Below the pieces are notes generated by a model. The model was given only the letters and a program-made list of their open reading frames with translations. It was not told where the DNA came from and did no database searches. This document shows, one piece after another, positions 25,735 through 64,000 of a DNA stretch of 64,000 nt. Numbering within the stretch: position 1 is the stretch's first letter; each line of letters begins with the position of its first letter. The DNA is from Trichosphaerium sp. ATCC 40318 (lineage: Eukaryota; Protista; Tubulinea). The position numbers and the translations under genes are program-made. The stretch is from contig JALMLS010000250.1 of the NCBI GenBank assembly GCA_038496445.1, forward strand, positions 8,683 through 72,682, given 5' to 3'.

Positions 25735-26115
25735 TTAGATTTGCTTTTTGTTGCATAAGATTTCATCGAATAAGATTTCATGAATATTACCCAATTGCAT
25801 GACATATTTATCTATTATCTGTTGGCAACCCAAAGTGATTTCATGCGCGCTTGACAATGCCTTGATACCCTCATCTGTTACATTACAGGAACTCAAGTCA
25901 ACAGTATGAACACCAGCCAATGCTTTGATGCCTTCATCTGTTATATTACAACAGCTCAAGTTGATCTTAACACCAGTCAATGCTTTTAAACCTTCGTCTG
26001 TAATTCTTCTATCCATTAAAGATATTTCATATACACCAGTCGTAAATTGCACGTGATTATCTTTAATGTGCCCATGTAAAGTAATTGGGGTAGCCTTTGT
26101 TGCCGTATTTATCAT
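25735..26115 (-). CDS. Intronless short LRR protein (ITDEGIKALAGVHTVDLS repeats); may be a fragment
   Basis: Three to four repeats: ITDEGLKALTGVKINLSCCN, ITDEGIKALAGVHTVDLSSCN, VTDEGIKALSSAHEITL. Confidence 0.65.
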   Translation of the reverse strand: MINTATKATPITLHGHIKDNHVQFTTGVYEISLMDRRITDEGLKALTGVKINLSCCNITDEGIKALAGVHTVDLSSCNVTDEGIKALSSAHEITLGCQQIIDKYVMQLGNIHEILFDEILCNKKQI

Positions 26116-40321: not shown

Positions 40322-42190
40322 ATGAGCGAAGACATTGATAAGCATATACTTAAACGATACGAAATCGTATCGAAGCTTGGAAAAGGAGTAAGCACTTTTT
40401 AAAACCTTTTCTATATCCTATTCGTTGCCTACGTTGCAAAGAGCAGCGTTATTTTAAAATCAGAACCGCTTGTCGAACTAGACAACGATTCACTTGTAGG
40501 AGTGACTTTTTGTCGTTTGGCCTTGAAATCTCTTCTTACTTCGCTCTTTCAACACTGCAAACAGTTCTAACAATGGAACGCAGTGAGCTCCGATCTATTT
40601 TCAGCAGCTTTATAGTATGACGCTAACTTTACCCAGGCGTACGGTATTGTATGGAAGTGTATCGACCAAAAGACAGGAGAAACTCTTGCTTTGAAAAAGA
40701 TTTTCGACGCCTTTCAAAACGCCACAGATGCACAACGTACTTTCAGGTAGCTCTAACACTAGCGTGTGACCCTAATTAACCTCGATCTTAGAGAGATTCT
40801 ATTTTTGCAGGAGTTTAGTGACCATGAGAATATTATCAAGCTAAAGAACGTCTTGAAGGCAGAAAACGACAGAGATATCTACTTAGTGTTCTTTTACATG
40901 GAGACCGATCTACACTCCGTCATTCGCGCCAATATTCTAGAAGGTAAGTACCTTATTGCATTCTCTACACTCTCAAGTGTATTTTGAAACGTTTAAAGCT
41001 TCGTCGTATCTTTTTACTGACTTTCTTGTTTTCAGGTGTTCACATGAGATATATTGTATATCAACTACTCAAAGCAATTAAGTTCTTGCACACTGGTAAT
41101 GTGTTGCATCGTGATTTGAAACCAGGTACGTTTTGATAATACGACGGATAGGAAGTAAAAACAACTTCTTTTTGTTTTTTTGTGTTTTTTCGGTTTTGTT
41201 AAGTGCTATTTAGGTAATATCCTCATTGATTCCTCTTGCGACGTTAAAGTAGCTGGTACGTTGTTGTTTTCCTTAGCGTATGCTTATTTTACTTGAGATT
41301 TCGGACTTGCCCGTCTCGTTGATGACGATAGCAAGGAAAAAGTCGCTCTTATGACTGACTACGTTGCCACTCGTTGGTACCGTGCTCCAGAGATTCTACT
41401 GGGTTGTAAAAAGTATACAAAAGGTATGTTTAGCGCTTTTTTTTTCTTTCGCTAATTAACCGCCTAGGTGTTGATATGTGGTCCATTGGCTGTATTTTGG
41501 CCGAGTTACTCGGTGGAAAGCCTTTGTTCCCTGGTACATCTACAATGAACCAATTGGATCGTATCATGGAAATTACTGGAACTCCATCCGCCAGCGATAT
41601 TGCTTGCCTTGACTCAAGTTATGCAGCTACTATGATAGCGTACGCTAGTTTCTCCGGCATTTGTATTTTTGTGCTGACTATTTTCGCAGTTCTCTACCTA
41701 AATCGCATCCTAAGTCGCCGGAGCAACTATTCCCACATGCTCCTCCAGATGCTATTGATCTGTTGATGAATCTTCTTGTATTTAACCCTGACAAGCGTAT
41801 GACCGCTGAGGGTGCCTTGAAACACGAATACGTGTCTCAATTTCACAATGAGGAAAACGAACCTTGTTTTACCCACAAGATTACGCTCCCATTCGATGAT
41901 AATACTAAGTTTACCATCGAAGAGTATCGTAACAAGTTATACTCGATGGTAGATAAAAAGAGGAAAGAACGAAGAGTTCAACGCGAAGGACGCCGCGAAC
42001 GTAGAAAGAGCAGAAATGTAGAATCTACTAAAAAGGACAAGAAAAAACGTACGTTGATTGACAACCAGTGCTTCTCTCGTTTTCTGACTCTGGTTTAGAT
42101 AGAAAGAGTTCGGAGAAGACTCGTAAGTTAGACGACAAGAAAGCACGTAAGAAGGAAGACAAGAAATCCAAAGGTGACGACGATTCTTAA
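40322..42190 (+). CDS. MAPK15: Atypical MAP kinase ERK7/MAPK15 (Dictyostelium ErkB-like)
   Basis: [68 protein letters not shown]. Confidence 0.95.
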
Positions 42191-49224: not shown

Positions 49225-50843
49225 ATGTCTAAATACGCAGGTAAGAGGAAGGAAGTGAAGGAAATAAACGACTTACAACGATTAGAACACCATGAAGACC
49301 TAAAACTTGTTCAAAAGAAAGCAAAGCAGTTTGCTGATATGCTGCGAGCATCAAAACACTCGGTAGCGTACACAGGTACGCAAACAATATAATTTTGATC
49401 CATTTTTAACTTTTTTCCCTAGGAGCTGGTATTTCTACCTCCGCAAACGTCCCTGACTACAGAGGGCCTACAGGAATATGGACGCAAAAAGAACAAGGCA
49501 TAAAGCCCAAACTAGAAGGTTTTATGGACGAAGCTTGTCCTACATTCGGCCATATGGCACTTATGGAGATGCTGAAGCCGTAAGTATTAATTTTCGGAGA
49601 TTGCACCGCAGCGTCTTGGTTTTTTTTGACAAGTTTTAAAGGAATCACCTCAGCCATATTGTCTCGACAAATGTTGATTGTTTACATCTGAGAAGCGGTG
49701 CACCTAGATCTAAAGTATCTGAAATACATGGTAATGTATTCAAGTACGTACTTTTTAAAGACCTAAAGATAGTGAATTCGTACTAAGTGAACACTTAGGG
49801 AAGTGTGCGCTGATTGCGGAGCTGAATATTTCCGACACTTTGATGTCCTTGGACGTGTTAAAAATAGACAAACTGGAAGACTGTGTGAAAAACGTGGCTG
49901 TAAAGGTGTACTTAAGGATTGCATCATTAACTTCGGTGAAGTACGTATACGTATACTGCTAGAGCACGTTGAAGTCAAGTATTAACATGTATACCTTAGT
50001 TCCTAAGTTCAACTGAACATTCAAATGCAGTAAAAAACTCAAAAAAAGCTGACTTGGCAATTGTAATGGGCACAAGTATGCGTGTTTCATCAGCTGCAGA
50101 GTATCCTCTAGCGTAAGGACTTAAATTCATATCAAAAAAGTTACTTATTGATCGTGTTTAGCGTTGCAAAAAGAGGTGGACAACTTGTCATTATTAATCT
50201 TCAAAAAACTCCTTATGACAAGAAAGCAACACTTCGTGTTTGGGCAAAAACAGATGTATTCCTAGAGATGGTATCAAAAGAGCTTGGTATAGATGTACCA
50301 GCCTACGATATGTCGAAAGATCCAATATTGAGTGTTCCTAAAGAGACTAAAACGCTTAAAATTAAGAAACTATGGAAAGGAGTGACAAAAGAAGATGTCA
50401 AAGATACTTTTAGTAAACATGGCAAAGTCAAACATGTGTACTACTATGATAGCTATGCATACGTTGTATTTGATAAAGTAGAAAGTGCTGTAAGCGCACT
50501 GGCGTCAATCAATGAGGTACATACTCAGAAAAAAGCAAGAATCTCGCCAACGTCTTTTTTTTTTACTGCTTTTGGTTTTTAACCTCATTTTTTCTCTTAG
50601 GGTGCTGATAAGCTTAAAAATGTAGTTGCAGATTATGCATGTGGTATCGTGAATCCTGATTTTGAGCGAATGAAACAAACAGTATCAACTGTCAGTGGAA
50701 GTTCTATGGCTGATGATGAGCCGTAAGTTTTTACATGTTCTAAATATTTGTTCTTTTTCTAATTTAATCACCATAGACCTCCACCTGCACTTCTAGCTGA
50801 AGTATTGACAAAATTCAATAAAGTCCTGAAACCAGCAAATTGA
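49225..50843 (+). CDS. Class IV sirtuin (SIRT6/7-like) fused to a C-terminal RRM
   Basis: [34 protein letters not shown], Zn ligands [26 protein letters not shown]; [45 protein letters not shown]. Confidence 0.88.
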
Positions 50844-52382: not shown

Positions 52383-53826
52383 TCATTGAGGCAAAAAGAC
52401 TGGCATCAGTGATTCTACAATAGTTTCGGTCACTTTTGGAATTGAAAACGTGATTCTGATTGTATGTACATCCAAGCTCTCCTCCTCAATCAAAGTCTAC
52501 ACAAAAGAGTATCAAACAATGAAGTTGCAAGCGATTTTGTAGGTGTAGTAAAACGTACAGCTGATTCTAAGAATGCACACAATATAGTCACAAGTTTTTC
52601 ACGCATCAACTTGTTGTGTACTACTACATTGACATTTGTTTCCAACAATGGACTACGTCGATATTAGTAAACAGCCTACTTAAAACAACAATTGACGCAC
52701 TCTACACCGATCAAATAATCGTGGTGCATTGCTTTTCGATCAACTAAAGTTGAGTAATATATCACCACAAATGTTTCTGATCCTACCATTGCTCGTTTCA
52801 TATAGGATTTACTTAAACTTTCCTTTGTATTATATAAGTGCGCCCAAATAGTACGTTGTGCTTTTGCCCACAACTCTTCCGCTGAGAGACGTAAGGGAGT
52901 GAACTTGGTATAAATTACTAGTACCCAAGTTGGAATAGTCCCATTTTATTCCTGAAATTGCATCAACACATCTCGCCTTTACAACTTCCGGTCCAATTTC
53001 ATTATCAGTCCATAATAGTCTAAACTCACCATTATCGAAACTAGGGTACTATTTGAAAGAATAAATACAGAACAGGTTTTGTCTATATGCGTACCATACC
53101 ACAACGTTGAAAGTACTTTGTCGTCATTGATCTACCAAGTTCTGTTGCTAGATATATTACCGTGCCACTTGCTACCGTCTCGGCACAGAAAACACTCTTC
53201 ATGCGCTTGCCGCGCCGTGCCTATAAAAAAGTTTGTTGTTGTACTCAAAGAACACTGTACATCACGATGCAGAATTGCTACAAAGTCGTGTTGCCACTGT
53301 TTTTGTAGACGTCCAAGAATATGAATGACTGTTAAAATTGGTAGTTTACACTCTGGTACATGTTAGTGTAATAACAAGATGTATTAAGCACGTGCTACAA
53401 GGTATGTTCATATCTTCCCATACAATGGGTACGCCATAGTATTCAGCTGCAAACCATAAGCCTCCAGGATCTTCGATACTTGTCATTTCTTCATTTTTCA
53501 TCAAACTCAATATTTTCGGGAGATGCTTTGAATGACTATTTTTGGAGAGTACGTTATTTTGTCGGATGTGTTTTCAAATATTGTCTTTTAATTAAGTAAG
53601 GAGCGCACCTACATTCCTCCAAAAGCGTAGTAGTTGATGAATTATCTTGTAATGATTCAAAATGTACTTTAGACGCGAAAAGAGACGATGGATACGCGTT
53701 TAGGAGTGTTTCTGACAGTGCGAAGGTATAATTACCACATATAAACTGTACTGACGTTTTAGTTGTTGGTACAGATGTACCAGGTGCCTGATTCAATTTT
53801 CTTTTCTTTAGTTGAGGCTCTGACAT
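52383..53826 (-). CDS. NLS-BTB/POZ family gene, copy A
   Basis: MSEPQLKKRKL; KCTD-type BTB F.LSETLLNAYPSSLF...LPKILSLM..LWFAAEYYGV; exon structure shared with the other copies; ends LMPVFLPQ*. Confidence 0.8.
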
Positions 53827-53904
53827 GCTTTACTCTAAAATAACGCAAAGTCAACGTCGTTATTGAATTGTCTAGCCCGATAAAATAGAGTTATTTAGAA
53901 CTAA

Positions 53905-54170
53905 TAATGTCGATTTCTACTTAAACGTTTCCGCCTCTATATGGGCTTTACATACTTGCATAGAAGAGCCAAGTTCGACTATTTGTATGCGTTTCAGGAG
54001 CGTTGTGAGCGAAGGCAATAAAGACGAAAACAGTGCGAGTTTTCTTTGTAAACACTCCAAAAAATGACAACAAACGCTACAGCTGAAAACTTTACGAGTT
54101 TTCTTTGTAGCAAGCGCTCTAAATGACAGGAAACTTGCACAATTTTCGGCTTTTTTGCCGCAAAAGCGGA
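53905..54170 (-). repeat. Dispersed non-coding repeat, copy 2 (inverted relative to 20170-20432)
   Basis: Reverse complement matches copy 1; lies between the divergently transcribed BTB copies A and B. Confidence 0.9.
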
Positions 54171-54501
54171 AATGTTTAAGTGGTGCCAACATTTCAAAAG
54201 TAACCTAACGAATAGTACCACTACTTTTTTTGTTGTTCTACAAAGGCGTAGCGTTTGAAAAAGGGTGCAGATCTTTGCTAAAACTAGGAACAAAGTGCAA
54301 CATGCGTATTAAAACCTGGAGTAAGTTGAACTGAGCTACTTGGCATATTATCAAAGTGACTTGTTATTCTATGCAAAGAACTAGCTGGTAAAAAACTAGA
54401 GTGCCATTAGTTTTTGTATTTATCATCCACTTTTTTTAGCACCAACAAAGTCCATCGCTTTCAAGATTGATTTATTAGTCTGTTACTTTTACAACTTCTT
54501 T

Positions 54502-55930
54502 ATGTCTGAACCACCAAAGAAGAAGAGAAAGTTGGATTCTAAAGATACAACACCACTAGCAACTGGTAGTGAAAAGTTTGTTTGTGGTGACTTTAGTTTC
54601 ACACTTTCAGAAACACTTCTAAACGCGTATCCATCATCTTTTTTCGCGTCTAAACTTCATTTTGAATCATTACAAGATAATTCATCAACAACAACAGTTT
54701 TGGAGGAATGTAGGTACGCATTACCCGTCATATACACCAACTATCACTCTAGTGTTCTAACTCTTCAAAACCAGTCATTCAAAGCATCTCCCGAAAATAT
54801 TGAGTTTGATGAGAAATGAAGAAATCACAAATATCGAAGATCCTGGAGGCTTATGGTTTGCAGCAGAATACTATGGTGTACCCATTGTGTGGAAAGACAT
54901 GAACATGCCTTTTAGCACGTGCTTAATACCTCCTTTAGTACTTACAATACTAGGATTTAAACTGCCGATCTTAGCTGCAATAAATATTATCGATGATCTG
55001 AGAACAGTGTGGAAAGGCAATCTGAAGACAAATCTACGTCGTGCCGTACGTTATCTTTGTAACAACAACAAACTGTTTCATAGGCAAGAGGAGGTAGTTT
55101 CACAATCACTCTTTGTAGTGCCGAGAAAGTTGCACGTGGTAGCCCAAAGTTTTTAGCATCAGACCTTGGCAGATCTATAACAGTAAAGTTCCTTAAACAC
55201 TGTGGCTTGGTATAATCATCCAACTTATTCTATATTAATTTTTTCGAATAGAATTGTAGCTTTGCTACTGGGGAGTTCAGAATCTTATGGACAGATGAAG
55301 AAGTTGGACCTGCAGTTGTAAATGCGAGGTGTATTGACGCAATTTTGGGAAAACAATGGGTGTATACCAATTTGAGTAGGGTTTTTACTACCATTGTTCG
55401 CTCTTAATTTTACTTAGCGGAAGAGTTATGGGCAACATCACAACGTAAAATGTGGGAGCATCTACTCCGTGAAAAAGAAAGTATACATGCGACCTATGTC
55501 GAACAAGCAATGATAGGATGGGAAACATTTGTGGTGATGTATCACTCAACTTTAGTCAAAACAAAAAAAAGAATATATTATGACTATCTGATCAATGTAG
55601 AGTATGTACACCTCACCATTTGATTGATGACAATATTTTACTAATGCCACATAGTCCATTGTTGGAAACAAATGTCAATGTATTAGTACACAACAAGTTG
55701 ATGCGTGAAAAACTTGTGACTATATTGTGTGCATTCTTAGAATCAGCTGTACGTTTTCACTGCATCTACACAGCTTCATACTTTTTGGTTCCATTGGCTG
55801 ATTACATTTTGTGTAGACCTTAATTGAAGAGGAGATATTAGATGTACACACAATCAAAATCACTCTTTCAATTCCAAAAGTGAGCGGAGCTATTGTTGAT
55901 TCATTGATACCAGTCTATTTGCCTCACTAA
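54502..55930 (+). CDS. NLS-BTB/POZ family gene, copy B
   Basis: MSEPPKKKRKL; spliced LEECSHSKHLPKILSLMRNEEITNIEDPGGLWFAAEYYGV; ends LIPVYLPH*. Confidence 0.82.
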
Positions 55931-56198
55931 CAGCAATGTGCCAGTACGTTGTACAGTCTTTAGGGAACATTGACATATTCCAAAGTTTGTTTATCAAGCT
56001 GAAAACATCATTTGAAAGATATCTCGCTTCGACGAGTAAACGAAACATCCCTAACAATAAATGTTTTTTTGGTGCCTGAGTTTGTTCCCGTGTTGTTGCA
56101 CGTTAAACATCATTATGTATTGGTTGCTTGTATAATTTACTGATGCAATATTATGTACGTACGGCCAAGGTAGCCTTTAAAGAACTCCAGTATCTTTT

Positions 56199-57537
56199 AT
56201 GAATGAAGCTACCCGTGAAGACGCTTGTGAAGTTACTCATTGTCACATCAGTTGTAATTCGAAAACTAAAACGATTTCGACTTTGGAGGAATGTAGGTAT
56301 GTATCATGACGCATCATCAATAAGTATACGCACTGACTGAGTATCAGCCATTCAAACTTTCTTCCAACAATCGTAAGTTTGATGAGAAAAGAAGAAATGA
56401 CGAGTATTGATGATCCTGCAGGATTATGGTTTGCAGCAGAATACTATGGTGTTACGATTGTTTGGGAACACATAAACATGCCCTTGGGTATGTGGTTCAA
56501 ATACTCAACTCTTTGTTTGTTTACATATCATAGCACCTAAGCTAGCAATTGTCGCTGTTGTAAACATATTCAGATAGATACGAACTTTTTGGGAATCCTT
56601 GAAAACTTCACTTAAAAAAAGAGTAAGTGTTCTCAACGTATTCCACAAGTGTATTAACTCGTGTTAAAGGCAATCCGTGGTTACAACTCAGATACGGTTT
56701 GTAACCATGTTGAGGAACCATATTTAAATACGCGATTGGGTAGAGCTGCATTGGCAAAGTACTTTAATCACTGTAACTTGGTATGATATTAGCGAGCTTA
56801 TCGAAACTAACAACACCTCAACAAGCACCATAAATACTCAACAAATGAAGAAGGCGTATGCGAGCTGATAGTGCTTTGGACAGACGACGAGGTTGGATAT
56901 GAAATTGCCAATGCTAAAAGTTTTGCAGCAATTACAGGTGGATTTTGGAAGTTTGCCAACTTCAGTATGTTGTTTTCCTAGATGTACACGTTGTGATGTA
57001 TTGTTTAGCTGAAGAGTTGTGGTGCAGATCACAATATGTACGATGGAAAAGATTGTACGCAAAAAAGGAAATTCTAGAGCAAACCTACGCCCAACGAGCA
57101 AAAGATGTTGCAGAAAAAATTGTTATTTTGTATTGCACGCAGTCATTACCCCAAACAAATATTTACAGTGACGTTATTATTCACCCTGTGTATGTCTATA
57201 TTTTACAATTCTTGATACTAACGTGTATGAGCTAGTTCAAAGTTCTGTACTGTCAAAGCTATTGCAGACAGTTCGCAGATGCAGAAAAAACTTTGTAGTC
57301 TATTGTGCACTTTCTTGGAACTTGCAGTGAGTTCTTTTGTTTTGTTCAATACCTTATGATATATTGATTTGTTGCTAGACTTTCATTGAAGATAAAGTAC
57401 ACGACAACGACAATTACACAATCACATTATCAATTCCAAAAGTAGATGATTCATTGCTTGAAAGTTTTTTACCGATATTTCTTACTCCTTATGATCGAAA
57501 CCACCAAGTATATTTTGAGAAATCTAATGCCTGTTAA
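56199..57537 (+). pseudogene. NLS-BTB family, copy C (5' end replaced, premature stop)
   Basis: Homology begins only at ..TLEEC; NLS and first half of the BTB are missing; in-frame TAG at 56575-56577 in exon 3. Confidence 0.75.
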
Positions 57538-58100
57538 GAGTAATAAATAAGCTTCTATTGTATTGGTTTCCGTAATGGTACAGTTATGCTAGAACTACAT
57601 ACCTTCATAATTTTTAATACACATTGTATTTGGCATCAAGTGAATCTTCTTGCCTTACAAGAATAGCCACAGCAAGTATTAGCGATACTATGTTATTTAC
57701 TTTAAGTTTTTGCAAACAATAAAGAGCCCACGAGCGTTCCCTACACAAAGTAAGGTTTTTTTGATTTACTCTCAACTACGTGTATCCCTCGTGTACTGTG
57801 GAAGAAAACTGGTGCAATAATTCAATCACCACCAAGTTACATTTGCTTAAATTACACAAATTTTCCTTCATCGGGTAGAGTTCCGAAACATAACACAATG
57901 TCAACTATAAAGCCACTTGCATTTATGGTAACAACACCGCTCAATGTCAATGCGCCCTAAATAAAAGCTATGCAGTTGTCGTAAATGTTCCTTGTGCATA
58001 GTCTAGTTTGCATTCGTATTTGGTCATGACTTTTAGTAGTAGCAAGTGGAATCAAAATATGTTAATTTTTCTGGCAAGATAGACATCGACTCTTCTTGCG

Positions 58101-59526
58101 ATGTCTGAACCACATAAAAAGAAAAGAAAATTGAATCCAAGGGCTAAAACAACAGTATCGGCGACAGAAACATCAGTGCAATTTAAATGTGGTGACTTTA
58201 TGTTCACACTGTCAGAGGACAATCTTAGCGCGTATTCATCGTCTCTTTTCGCGTCTAAAGTACATTTTGAATCACTACAAGATAATTCATCAAAATCAAC
58301 GCTTTTGGAGGAATGTAGGTGCGCTCCTTAATTAAAAGACAAAATAATGTAACACTCCAAAAACAGTCATTCAAAGCATCTCCCGAAAATATTGAGTTTG
58401 ATGAAAAATGAAGAAATCACAAGTATCGAAGATCCTGGAGGCTTATGGTTTGCAGCTGAATACTATGGTGTACCCATTGTGTGGGACGACATGAACATAC
58501 CTTTTAGCACGTGCTTAATACCTCTGTTGTTACTTACAATACTATAGAAACTAAGTTGCCCATTTTATCTGTTATTAACATTCTCGAACTTCTGCAATTA
58601 ATGTGGAAAACCAACTTGAAAGAACTGCTGCTGGAAGATGTACGTATGTTTACTTGATGCCAACAACAAACTTTTTAAAAGGCGAGGGGTGGGAGCCGCA
58701 TGAACAATCTTTGTTCTCCTGAGAATATTGCAAACGGTAAGCCAATATACGTAGCGACAGAGCTTGGTAGATCAATAACAGTAAAATACTTCAAACAATG
58801 TGGCCTGGTATGATAAAAAAGAAACATTTCACATTAACTTTCCATAGCATGCCAGTTTTGATACAGACGGTTTAAACTTATTGTGGACTGATGACGAAGT
58901 TGCAAATGAGGTTGTAAAGGCGAGATGTATTGACGCAATTGTAGGAAAAAAATGGGCATATTCTAACTTGAGTATGTTTGTTTATTTCAACACTAGCTCC
59001 CCTTTGTAACACCATTTAGCGGAAGAGTTATGGGCAACATCACAACGTAAAATGTGGGAGCATATACTCTATGAAAAGGAAAGAATGCATAAATCCTATG
59101 TCAAACAAGCAATGATAGGATGGGAAACATTTGTGGTGATGTATCACTCAACGTTAGTCAAAACAAAAAAAAGAATATATTATGACTATCTGATCAATGT
59201 AGAGTATGTACACCTCACCATTTGATTGATGACAATATTTTACTAATGCTACATAGTCCATTGTTGGAAACAAATGTCAACGTATTAGTACACAACAAGT
59301 TAATGCGTGTAAAACTTGTGACTATATTGTGTGCATTCTTAGAATCAGCTGTACGTTTTATTGCACCTACAAAATTGTTCGTAAGTTCATTGGTTGATAC
59401 TCTTTTGTGTAGACCTTAATTGAAGAGGAGATATTGGATGTACATACAATCAAAATCACATTATCAATCCCAAAAGTGAGTGAAGATATTGTTGATTCAT
59501 TGATACCAGTCTATTTACCTCACTAA
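58101..59526 (+). CDS. NLS-BTB/POZ family gene, copy D
   Basis: MSEPHKKKRKL; eight exons splice in frame to ...LIPVYLPH*. Confidence 0.82.
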
Positions 59527-59826
59527 ACAACCTTTAACGATATAGCCATTGTGTAAACAGAGGTTTTACCAAGGAGCTGTAATTGTATTTGTAGGATCAA
59601 CAATAGCGAACATTTTGCTGTGGGAGTATCCGAAACAGCAATAAACTATTCTCGTCTGTTTAAATATCAGGTTGTTGTAACCGTGTAAGTACGAAAATTG
59701 AGTTGCTACATGTGCTTGTTATTACCGGCAACGGTTGGGGTGACGTTCAGAGAACTAAAAAATTACACTGGGACTTAGCAACGAAAGCATCTTCTGACTG
59801 TAGAAACAGCAAAACAGTTCGAACTA

Positions 59827-61259
59827 ATGTCTGAACCACCAAAAAAGAAGCGGAAACTATATGTGAGGACTAAAACTACCTCAGGTCTAAAAGAAAATGA
59901 CATTCATTTTAAATGTGGCGATTTTAGCTTCGCACTTTCAGAGGACCTTCTCAACGCGTATTCATCGTCGCTTTTCGCGTCTAAAGTGCATTTTGAATCA
60001 TTACAAGATAATTCATCAACAACAACGATTTTGGAGGAATGTAGGTGCGCTTATACTTAAACGACAATATTTGAACAAATAACACTCCAAAAACAGTCAT
60101 TCAAAGCATCTCCCGAAAATCTTGAGTTTGATGAGAAAAGAAGAAATCACAAGTATCGAAGACGCCTCCAATTTGTGGTTTGCAGCAGAATACTATGGCA
60201 TACCTATTGTTTGGGAAGACCTTAACATGCCTTTTGGCACGTGACTCTTTAAGTCTGTATTCATTGCTAACGTACCTATAGCTTCAAAGTTATCAATTCT
60301 GGCTGTTACTAGTATTTTAGCCCAAGTACGATCTCTTTGGGACACGTTAAAAACAATACTACGGAACAACGTATGACTCCGTTGGTTGTACACACGTATT
60401 AACTTTTGTAGGCAAAAACTGGCTCCTTGAAATATATTATATGTAAGGTTAAAAGCAATACGGGCGGTGCTACAAGCTATTTCACTACAAAATTGGGTAG
60501 ATTGATATTGGACAAGTATTTCAAACACTGTGGCTTAGTACACAAGTAACGAATGTTAGTCGCTAATGTTTTACCAGTGTCATAACTGCGATGATGATAT
60601 TTTAACTATACTATGGACGGACAATGAAGTTGGTCCTGACCTTGTAAAAGCAAGATGTATCCAAGCACTCACTGGACAGTTTTGGGAATTCACAAACTTG
60701 AGTACGTTTTCTGATATCATTTCATTTGTAACTGACTTAATAGCGGAAGAACTATGGGCATATGCTCAATATAAAACGTGGCAAGATCTTGAGATTGAGA
60801 GGGAGAAAATGATACGATCGTATGTGAGACAAGCATCAAAAGGTGCAGAGAAATTTGTTGTATTATATCGTTGTGCAAACACAGACCACCCTCGAGATTG
60901 TGGTATATACTACGATTATCTTATAGATGTTCAGTATGTACACTTGTTAAAAGTCCTATTTTGACTAACTGTATTGTAGTCCATCAATCGAAGCTTCTGT
61001 TGATGCTCTAGTCAAAGATGAAGGAATGCGTAAGAAGCTAGTTAGTCTATTCTGTCTATTTATAGAAACAGCAGTACGTAAACTATTCGTCATTCCAACT
61101 CTGATTGTTTTCTTGCAGACGTTCATTGAAGAGAAGATATTGGATAAAAAAACAATAGAAATCACATTATCAATCCCAAAAGTGAGCGAAGCTATTGTTG
61201 ACGATTTTTTACCAATGTATCTCACACCATTCACACTTCCAGCAAATCAAAAAATTTAA
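59827..61259 (+). CDS. NLS-BTB/POZ family gene, copy E (divergent C-terminus)
   Basis: MSEPPKKKRKL; BTB nearly identical to the other copies; C-terminal half strongly diverged; ends PANQKI*. Confidence 0.82.
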
Positions 61260-61538
61260 TTTGTAAATACATGCACAATGTCTTCATGGACCTGAATCAC
61301 AGCTATTTAACCTGACTTTTTAACATATCTCTGGTTGTTCGTTTGCAGTTTGTTTAATACCGTGAGTTGATAGATGTTCCCGCAAAATCTAGCCACACGT
61401 CAACCTTTTGTTTTGATTATCAAACCTTTGTGAGCATTCAAAAACTGCGTCAAGCCCTTTACCATGGTTTTTTTACACCTTTCAATCAAGAGTGCATAGA
61501 AAGCTTGCTTAATCTAGCTTGTTGCAACACTCAGAGCA

Positions 61539-62989
61539 ATGTATGAGCCACGAAAGAAAAGAAAGTTGAATCCAGCCAATGAGACAAAAGAAATATCAAT
61601 ACAGTTTATTTGTGGTGATTTTAGCTTCACACTTTCAGAGGAGCTTCTCAAAGCGCATCCAGTGTCTCTTTTCGCGTCTAAAGTACATTTTGAATCACTA
61701 CAAGATAATTCATCGAAATCAATGCTTTTGGAGGAATGTAGGCACGTATAGCGCTAACTATAATCCTGACATAATTATAACAACTATACTCTGCATTCTA
61801 ACACTCCAAAAACAGTCATTCAAAGCATCTCCCGAAAATCTTGAGTTTGATGAAAAAAGAAGAAATGACAAGTATCGAAGATCCTGGAGGCTTGTGGTTT
61901 GCAGCAGAATACTATGGTGTACCCATTGTTTGGAAAGATATAAACATTCCTTTTAGCACGTGCTTAATACCTTTGTTATCATCTGTTATTACTTACAAAA
62001 CTACAGCAAGTAAATTGCCCATTTTATCTGTTATTAACATTCTCGAACCTATACAAACAATGTGGAAAGGCAACTTGCCAAAAATACTTTTGGGAGATGT
62101 ACGTTTTTCTTGATGACACCAACAAACTATTTCGTAGGCAAAGGCTGGGAAATGCGCAACCATTATTTGCACTGCCCGCAGCGTTGCAATTGGTAGGCCT
62201 TTGTATGTAGCAACAGAGCTTGGTAAATCAATAGCAATTAAGTACTTTAAACACTGTGGCTTGGTATGGTATCAAACGCATTTGTTCAATATTAACTCTT
62301 TCAATAGCATCCTAGCTTTGATAATTTTGGCTTAAGGCTACTGTGGACAGACGAAGAAGTTGGCCCTGAACTTGTGAATGCAAGATGTGTCGATGTAGTT
62401 TTAGGAATAAAATGGGAGTATGCAAACTTGAGTAAGCTTATTCAATGACAATGTATACTTGTTTATGCACTTCAGCGGAGGAGTTATGGGCAATATCACA
62501 ACGTAAACTATGGAAGCATATACGACTTGAAAAAGAAAGTATACATAAATCCTACGTAAAACAAGCAATGATAGGATCAGAAACATTTGTGGTGATGTAT
62601 CACTCAACTTTAGTCAAAACAAAAAAAAGAATATATTATGACTATCTGATCAATGTAGAGTACGTACACCTCACCATTCGTTAGGTTAAATGAAGAGTAT
62701 TTTACTAATAATGCTGTAGTCCATTATTGGAAAGAAATGTCAACGTATTAGTACACAACAAGTTGATGCGTAAAAGACTTGGTACTATATTGTGTGCATT
62801 CTTAGAATCAGCTGTACGTTTTATTGCACCTACAAAATTGCTCATAAGTTCATTGGTTGATACTCTTTTGTGTAGACCTTAATTGAAGAGGAGATATTGG
62901 ATGTACATACAATCAACCTCACGTTATCAATTCCAAAAGTGAGCGAAACTATTGTTGATTCACTGATACCAGTCTATTTGCCTCACTAA
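61539..62989 (+). CDS. NLS-BTB/POZ family gene, copy F
   Basis: MYEPRKKRKL; GC donors at introns 1 (61742) and 2 (61956); ends LIPVYLPH*. Confidence 0.8.
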
Positions 62990-63684
62990 TCGCATTTCAC
63001 AGTCTTTCTTGATAGTGAAAACACTTCAAGATACTACTATTATGTAATACTGAGGTGTTGTCAAAGAGTTGAAACTGTATTTGTAGGATTAAAATCGCTT
63101 CAAACTGGCATTGTAGCAAGAGTATCGAACAATAAACCACGGTCATATAGTCATTCACACTTCCACCTGAGTAACTAAATATGTAACTATTGTAGCATCC
63201 TCGTTGCTGTTGTGAGTGAATCCTGGTACCAGGTGCTTCATAAAGTTCTTACAATTGTCGTTACGGGCTGCAACAGCTTTCTGAACTAAAGCGTAGATGA
63301 GGTTGTAAAGGATTTAACCTGAAATAGCTAAGCCTACTTTTTAAAAGGCCACTCCCGATTTGTAGCATGCACGTGACTTTCTATACTTATGCTCACTTAA
63401 AGTACTCCATAAGGATACACTAATAGTATAGCTCTCAGAGTTGCAAAAGGCTACGTATGTTCACAAACTGTCTCGAAAAATCTGGCTTAGGTAAAATCCA
63501 TAGTCTTTTTATGAGTAAATGTACCCTACTTTAAAAAGAGCTAGAGTACGTAGCGTTCCGCAATCCTCCTTGGCTTAATGTACTTTAAAACACCTGATTT
63601 AATAGTTACTAGAAGAACTATGGGCTTGCGTTTGATATAAAACATAGCAGATCTAGACTGACAAGATCAATTGATCCTTAAAAA

Positions 63685-63742
63685 AGGCGAAGCTATTGTT
63701 GACAACTTTTTTTAATGTATCTCACACCATTCATGCTTCGCC
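63685..63742 (+). pseudogene. Short fragment of the last exon of an E-type BTB family gene
   Basis: gcgaagctattgttgacaacttttttt..aatgtatctcacaccattca matches 61186-61232 with an indel. Confidence 0.7.
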
Positions 63743-64000
63743 TTGTAAATAGGTTCTGTTTAAATAAATTGTTTGCAAGTACGCTGTTTAGTTAACTAAT
63801 TTATTTACTCCCTTTCTCATATGGTGTGAGATAAATTGGTAAAAACTTGTCTACAAGGGCTTTATTAACCCGTGGAATGATAACGTGAAAATGATTGTGT
63901 TTTCACTCACTATCTCTTCTTTAACAAAGGTCTATACAATAGTTAATACACAATTTACCTCATATTGTACATACTGCTGTTTTCAACAATAAACACAATA

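Follow-up and report, generated by a model that had tools for sequence, protein, structure and literature searches.

Expanded families of MATH-BTB genes in nematodes and grasses and of F-box genes in nematodes (PMC1257465, PMC4091423, PMC8120010) are among the closest described counterparts of the genes analysed here: they comprise dozens of tandem paralogs accompanied by pseudogenes, and join a conserved adaptor part to a faster-evolving part. The BTB core fold consists of about 95 residues that form one sheet (B1/B2/B3) and five helices, arranged as B1-B2-A1-A2-B3-A3-A4-A5 (Stogios et al., PMC1257465), and the T1 domains, for which the B3/FFDR motif has been described, show only remote sequence similarity to other BTBs (PMC1257465). 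The arthropod Tramtrack-group transcription factors are another lineage-specific expansion of nuclear proteins with a multimerizing N-terminal BTB (PMC11426971). The family described below was recognized in a 64,000-nucleotide stretch of the genome of Trichosphaerium sp. ATCC 40318 (Tubulinea; assembly GCA_038496445.1, contig JALMLS010000250.1, positions 8,683 to 72,682, forward strand), hereafter the window, where it forms a tandem array that resembles these expansions in layout and in the architecture of the encoded proteins.

The reading that we prefer, with a probability of roughly 0.55, is that of a lineage-specific multigene family, the products of which combine a motif resembling a nuclear localization signal (NLS), a linker, a divergent T1/KCTD-type POZ/BTB module and a family-specific C-terminal region, and which evolves by birth-and-death, gene conversion and purifying selection. 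An earlier examination of the window without database searches (the original prediction) had proposed that the array encodes nuclear receptors of Cullin-3 RING ubiquitin ligases (CRL3) under diversifying pressure. As it stands, this is a well-defined orphan gene family and not a demonstrated defence system.

The array, the family and its proteins

Coordinates are window positions, the copies are lettered A to F along 52383-62989, and the window ends where the contig ends. Repeat analysis and a nucleotide alignment of the six copies resolve tandem units, each about 1.45 kb long, at 52383-62989, and the repeat analysis places 12 families of direct repeats and 21 of inverted repeats in the interval from 52.4 to 63.9 kb. 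Exon boundaries were set at conserved alignment columns with canonical splice dinucleotides, and the exons were spliced by script; the resulting models of copies A and B were independently re-derived by a dynamic-programming exon modeller, which reproduces copy D exactly. Five copies have intact frames and 8 exons each, namely, copy A (52383-53826, minus strand, 362 residues), which is inverted with respect to the rest, and, on the plus strand, copies B (54502-55930, 361 residues), D (58101-59526, 363 residues), E (59827-61259, 373 residues), with a divergent C-terminal half and a longer tail, and F (61539-62989, 358 residues), in which the donor of intron 1 is GC instead of GT. The exons of copy B, for example, lie at 54502-54713, 54775-54914, 54954-55045, 55084-55209, 55252-55375, 55418-55601, 55655-55748 and 55817-55930 (plus strand). 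Intron ends are GT/GC-AG throughout, and intron positions and phases are conserved among the copies and common to all modelled paralogs.

Copy C (56199-57537, plus strand) is a pseudogene that belongs to a different (third) subclade and carries three lesions: exon 1 is truncated at the 5' end to about 17 nt, exon 3 is interrupted by an in-frame TAG (56575-56577), and the 84-nt length of exon 7 (57243-57326) results in a frameshift. Beyond copy F lies a decayed E-like remnant on the plus strand, the two segments of which (63612-63657 and 63687-63739) are similar to exon 6 and exon 8 of copy E (79% identity over 47 nt and 87% over 54 nt, blastn) and are separated by an internal deletion. The layout of the original prediction, with five intact copies, one pseudogene, one fragment and one inversion, is thus recovered by the repeat analysis, the alignment and the spliced frames. 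To this layout we add another inverted copy, truncated where the contig ends: its exon 8 lies at 63821-63947 on the minus strand, with 72-77% identity to exon 8 of copies B, D, E and F (blastn), and the rest of it would lie past the contig end.

This array belongs to a much larger family, which has several clusters in the genome. Exon-level searches of the whole assembly yield 67 exon-1 and 40 exon-6 matches, and chaining of exon matches on the loci taken for analysis gives 61 gene-like groups. In what follows, L-numbers (L025, L031, L037, L038, L045 and others) denote individual loci taken from assembly contigs and C-numbers denote contigs. The main cluster consists of about 38 groups within the first 105 kb of contig C31; pairs or singletons are found on C44, C3, C6, C7 and C74, and more distant subfamilies on C34 (four in tandem), C37 (two), C107 and C1. 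The raw match counts overstate the number of loci because contig C363 (L031, L039, L032) is an inverted haplotig of part of C31 (11-41 kb), with 92-99% identity; the genome contains at least 45 family loci. The exon modeller produced intact 8-exon models for 27 further paralogs in addition to the five window copies and none for nine loci. A junction-pattern search of the genome's own sequence found no processed, intron-less copy.

All the hallmarks of birth-and-death evolution, that is, tandem arrays, frequent pseudogenes and lineage-specific expansion, are represented among these loci, several of which are not intact, and the pseudogene, remnants and inversions in a family of about 50 members bear out the turnover that had been proposed. 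The sequence shows that the family grows by tandem duplication and inversion, loses members through decay and is patched by conversion tracts.

Each protein (358-373 residues in the window, about 360-390 in the family) consists of three parts: an SV40-type NLS-like motif, a conserved module of about 95 residues, and a C-terminal region of about 240 residues; in the alignment of 32 proteins, a short, variable linker rich in T, S and E separates the motif from the module. In copy B, the motif is PPKKKRKL, translated from 54511-54534 (plus strand); an equivalent occupies residues 4-11 in every intact copy (variants PPKKKRKL, PHKKKRKL and PRKKRKL), and among the 32 paralogs the N-terminus is kept as MSEPxKKKRKLNP, with KKKRK at residues 6-10. 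The core of the classical monopartite NLS is K-K/R-x-K/R, which KKKRK fits, and the segment is modelled at low confidence, with neither helix nor strand, in the first of two AlphaFold2 (AF2) models described below, as is appropriate for a core within an exposed, disordered segment. The subfamilies on C34, C7 and C107 carry instead PKAKRVKV, PKAKRQKL and PIAKRLK, which we take to resemble the c-Myc type of NLS, suggesting that what is kept is the function of the motif and not its precise sequence. The NLS-type N-terminus that had been noticed in the array is accordingly a feature of the intact copies and of all 32 paralogs; nuclear import itself is a prediction from the motif, and the family proteins are probably nuclear.

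The module is acidic, spans residues ~27-119 of copy D, and shows the highest conservation in the family (block identities of 0.5-0.9 in the profile of 32 proteins). In copy B, it is encoded by 54577-54914 (plus strand; residues ~26-117) and is split by intron 1 (54714-54774). The block singled out as almost invariant in the original prediction is indeed so by comparison: nucleotide identity between copies, including copy E, is 83-96% in exon 2 vs 47-80% in exons 3-5. In the C-terminal region, framework segments, such as YLKTELGR..KYFKxC, W(T/S)DxEVGPEVV, NLTEELWA, MRxKL..LLCxFLE and TITLSIPK, alternate with poorly conserved stretches, which in copy D are residues 141-170, 251-260 and 281-310. 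No Pfam family matches any C-terminal exon, and ESM Atlas has no usable neighbour for exons 5-6 of copy E. The predicted isoelectric point of the region is near neutral (6.4-8.9) and hence gives no hint of DNA binding. Alignment, Pfam, Atlas and word searches all agree with the earlier description of a faster-evolving region, with no recognizable domain, downstream of a conserved N-terminal module. The orphan domain, about 240 residues long, would be a sensible candidate for structure determination.

The probable POZ/BTB assignment of the conserved module

Among known domains, the module is closest to those of the KCTD proteins and the Kv-channel T1 domains (PF02214), which are likewise short, core-fold-only domains that lie near the N-terminus and precede a C-terminal domain specific to the family. 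In the ESM Atlas, the nearest clusters are BTB_2 (0.89), and the ten best named clusters all belong to the POZ clan. Two AF2 models (pLDDT 63 and 75.5, pTM 0.32 and 0.46) contain the elements E3-8, E11-16, H17-22, H24-31, (E34-38), E44-49, H64-80 and H91-100, with a further helix predicted from exon 3, so that the order B1-B2-A1-A2-B3-A3-A4 of the BTB core fold is present in the predicted structures. The top Foldseek lists (PDB for both models, and BFVD) consist nearly entirely of KCTD/T1, Skp1, Elongin C and BTB-Kelch structures, none of them significant, and the best match is a giant-virus T1-type BTB (E 0.043, probability 0.82). In VIA comparisons, the two halves of the module are colinear with the matching halves of BTB domains. 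By eye, a helix motif like that of T1 ('...NTGK...') can be made out in the distant subfamilies, as can a B3 strand that ends in LEEN or LEEC where T1 has FFDR.

Several observations count against the preferred reading. The splice sites on which the proteins are based are predicted from conservation alone. Pfam searches detect no BTB, even at E<=10, either in the exon peptides or in three natural open reading frames (ORFs) that read from exon 1 through the in-frame intron 1 into exon 2 (including L037:4868-5284 and L031:7740-8147). A search of the genome with PF02214 identifies 82 places, none of them in the family arrays, and hhalign comparison of the family with two local canonical BTB_2 domains gives a probability of 0.2; by sequence profiles, membership in clan CL0033 is thus not detected. 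All Foldseek E-values exceed 0.04, with TM scores of 0.2-0.35, and the VIA Z-score is never above 3.8. Moreover, the AF2 models were built from read-through ORFs, so that 17-20 residues encoded by the intron are inserted between B3 and A3; this insertion probably disturbs the way in which the two halves pack, and makes the global packing unreliable. Finally, these models cover the N-terminal part, and the description of the C-terminal region rests on sequence.

The sequence and profile results also fit an alternative in which the module is no BTB at all, the whole protein being an orphan of a new or unrecognized fold that yields BTB-like signals through a common small alpha/beta arrangement. 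The failure of a 54-sequence profile to match any of 1.84 billion proteins (see below) fits this alternative; phmmer and the same profile also found nothing relevant among PDB sequences, and VIA places the N-terminal half of the module on ubiquitin-like beta-grasp domains at a Z of 3.0-3.6, equal to that for BTB. Yet three independent Foldseek lists and the language-model neighbours converge on a single clan that accounts for far less than 1% of the libraries, and the colinearity of the halves and the NTGK and LEEN/LEEC motifs point the same way, so that we regard an unrelated fold as rather unlikely. A T1/KCTD-type POZ/BTB domain is the probable identity of the module, although membership is not established. 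For the 'KCTD-like BTB' of the original prediction, support is weak: the sub-threshold language-model neighbours and POZ-dominated Foldseek lists are consistent with it, but a BTB is picked up by none of the sequence and profile methods.

The differences from the known relatives are also substantial. Unlike KCTD and Kv-channel T1 proteins, the family has no significant PF02214 match although the genome has at least 80 canonical BTB_2 matches, and it combines LEEC/LEEN in place of the FFDR-type B3 motif with an N-terminal NLS and a C-terminal domain unrelated to known ones. The Tramtrack-group proteins differ in having the long BTB form and zinc fingers or other DNA-binding domains, whereas no known DNA-binding domain is present here. 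If the module is a true BTB, the family would represent a large expansion of BTB adaptors that is protist-specific and carries a recognition domain seen nowhere else, and would add a case to the recurring, lineage-by-lineage expansion of ubiquitin-adaptor-like families.

Selection, gene conversion and possible functions

Selection was tested at the level of partitions and 20-codon windows. For the five window copies, the Nei-Gojobori method gives a dN/dS (omega) of about 0.3 in the module and about 0.3 in the C-terminal region, with dS of 0.32 and 1.05, respectively, the C-terminal values being near saturation for distant pairs. A maximum likelihood codon model (GY+F3X4+G4, 30 paralogs) yields an omega of 0.23 for the module and 0.35, 0.28 and 0.32 for exons 3-4, 5-6 and 7-8, and tree lengths of 11.6 vs 28.1, 24.0 and 23.9 substitutions per codon. 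In ten independent sister pairs, omega is 0.25 in the module vs 0.29-0.34 in the C-terminal region, dS is 0.42 vs 0.53-0.69, and omega in 20-codon windows ranges from 0.16 to 0.49, nowhere near 1. At these two levels, the genes are under purifying selection along their whole length, including the variable part, and no concentration of positive selection is seen in the putative substrate-binding part.

The module diverges 2-2.4 times more slowly than the rest, at synonymous and non-synonymous sites alike, and the probability that two copies use the same codon at conserved amino-acid columns is 0.71 in the module vs 0.58 downstream. Residues 51-63 are nearly invariant even at six-fold Ser codons. 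Over about 30 paralogs, synonymous sites are near-invariant at 54640-54690 (residues 47-63 of copy B) and its equivalents, as in Ser TCT (30/30), Ser TCA (29/30), Gln CAA (25/25) and Asp GAT (29/29); this run points to gene conversion or to a constraint at the nucleotide level.

Mosaic patterns of identity are evident among the window copies. In copy B, a tract covering exon 6, intron 6 and exon 7 (55414-55757, plus strand) is shared with copy D (59016-59350): the two are 93, 98 and 97% identical over these three segments, but their identity falls to 58-73% over exons 3-5 and to 65% over intron 7. Copies D and F are 97% identical in intron 7, and copies A and B are 99% identical in exon 7, with flanking introns at 48-63%. 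Such tracts run counter to the relationships of the copies as a whole and represent gene conversion over a few hundred bases each. If conversion took place preferentially where the copies are most alike, this would account for the low silent divergence in the module. In every partition tree, copies A, B, D and F form one clade, with copy E outside. Homogenization with its neighbours was considered as the cause of the similarity of the copy E module and rejected, since its nearest relative in the partition trees is a copy on C31.

Because both dS and dN are lower in the module and gene conversion is patchy, the contrast in rates is no sign of diversifying selection. The family is therefore a cautionary case: a constant module with a variable tail can arise under uniform purifying selection when different parts of the gene differ in synonymous divergence and gene conversion, and the pattern alone does not signal an arms race.

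These data bear directly on the proposal that the proteins are nuclear Cullin-3 substrate receptors, with C-termini under diversifying selection, that serve in intracellular defence in the manner of the nematode MATH-BTB and F-box families. The tandem arrays with pseudogenes and some 50 paralogs, the faster divergence of the C-terminal half, the position of the variable stretches between framework segments, as binding loops would be, and the presence of several cullin genes in the genome all fit this proposal. Against it, omega is 0.28-0.35 in the C-terminal partitions and at most 0.49 in any window, the contrast in rates extends to synonymous sites, and Cul3 contact and expression are conjecture. 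The selection along the gene comes close to uniformly purifying at the level of regions and windows, the very pattern that the original prediction had set against itself, and the region- and window-level data do not favour the idea of diversifying selection and defence. The same omega values and the partly synonymous nature of the contrast set the family apart from the MATH-BTB and F-box expansions, as do the C-terminal position of its variable part, which is not a MATH domain, and the conjectural status of its cullin binding.

Cullin (PF00888) matches occur on seven contigs (C86, C31, C66, C47, C49, C37 and C121). One of these cullin genes lies within the main family cluster (L038:4214-6103, which is C31:94265-96103, minus strand). 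This gene, the only cullin typed among the seven contigs, encodes exon peptides whose best human matches are CUL4A/B (E 1e-13 to 1e-16), with weaker matches to CUL3. It appears to be orthologous to Cul4 and not a partner of the Cul3 kind, and was for this reason rejected as a link between the family and Cul3. Not all T1/KCTD-type BTBs bind Cul3. A CRL3 receptor role of the family is possible, and the full defence scenario is, in our estimate, quite unlikely. Under the preferred reading of a lineage-specific, POZ-type family, the protein would enter the nucleus, the POZ module would self-associate as T1/KCTD domains do and might dock a cullin, and the C-terminal domain would hold a partner that differs between paralogs.

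A more elaborate scenario draws on the introns. Intron 2 of copy B (54915-54953, plus strand) lies where the conserved module gives way to the variable part, and its donor, GCACGT, is of the GC type. The same type is found at intron 2 of copies A, D, E and F; copy C has GT there. Among the 32 modelled paralogs, a GC donor is found in intron 2 of 23 and in intron 1 of 9, and introns 3-7 almost all have GT. Reading through intron 2 reaches a stop within 2-86 codons, so that its retention would give a product limited to the NLS and the conserved module. The genes could then constitute a germline repertoire of nuclear, self-assembling POZ-scaffold receptors, with a new C-terminal domain for the recognition of foreign or selfish nuclear targets (viruses, transposons or effectors), and with retention of the GC-donor intron 2 as a switch to NLS-plus-POZ-only decoys that poison or tune the oligomers. 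We consider this combination very unlikely.

Relatives, origin and genomic neighbours

The 54-sequence profile, compared with a hidden Markov model library of representatives, finds zero relatives among 1.84 billion proteins. A word index of 5.8 billion clusters, queried with the N-terminal ORF and with the C-terminal ORF of the C34 subfamily, contains none; the JGI metagenome contigs and 2.9 million viral contigs, searched with the exon-2 alignment as the query, contain none either. The sequences submitted to external tools were individual exons or naturally occurring read-through ORFs, and joined coding sequences served for the alignments, trees and dN/dS estimates. By these searches, the family is a lineage-specific orphan with no detectable relative elsewhere.

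The family shares with the BTB families of giant viruses and poxviruses (BTB-Kelch, BTB/POZ) a large, lineage-specific expansion, an association with amoebae and top matches in the viral fold library; it differs in showing no sequence relationship to them, in being rich in host-type introns, and in having neither Kelch nor other known partner domains. Giant viruses often carry large families of BTB paralogs. That the copies are cargo of mobile elements or remnants of integrated giant viruses rather than ordinary host genes, as could be read from the high copy number, the clusters at contig ends (the start of C31, the end of C236 and all of C363) and the giant-virus BTB proteins among the best BFVD fold matches, deserves scarcely any credence given the seven short spliceosomal introns at conserved positions in every copy, the confinement of the similarity to the genes (flanks are 17-43% identical, with no terminal repeats), the lack of a relative among the viral contigs, and the ordinary eukaryotic genes nearby.

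Canonical Pfam BTB_2 (KCTD-type) genes directly adjoin family members at two places, L025:7814-8608 (plus strand) and L045:2546-3274 (minus strand); one of the two lies between two array copies on C31 and the other beside the C7 singleton. The word search with the neighbouring canonical BTB_2 gene likewise returned no matches.

The window as a whole has a G+C content of about 37% and short GT-AG introns, consistent with eukaryotic sequence, and a tRNA scan of its 64 kb detects no tRNA genes. The ORFs that neighbour the array are ordinary eukaryotic exons. They encode LRR_6 repeats at 25735-26115 (E 2e-14), the C-terminal end of a protein kinase domain at 41661-42098 and an RRM domain at 50148-50582 (E 5e-8).

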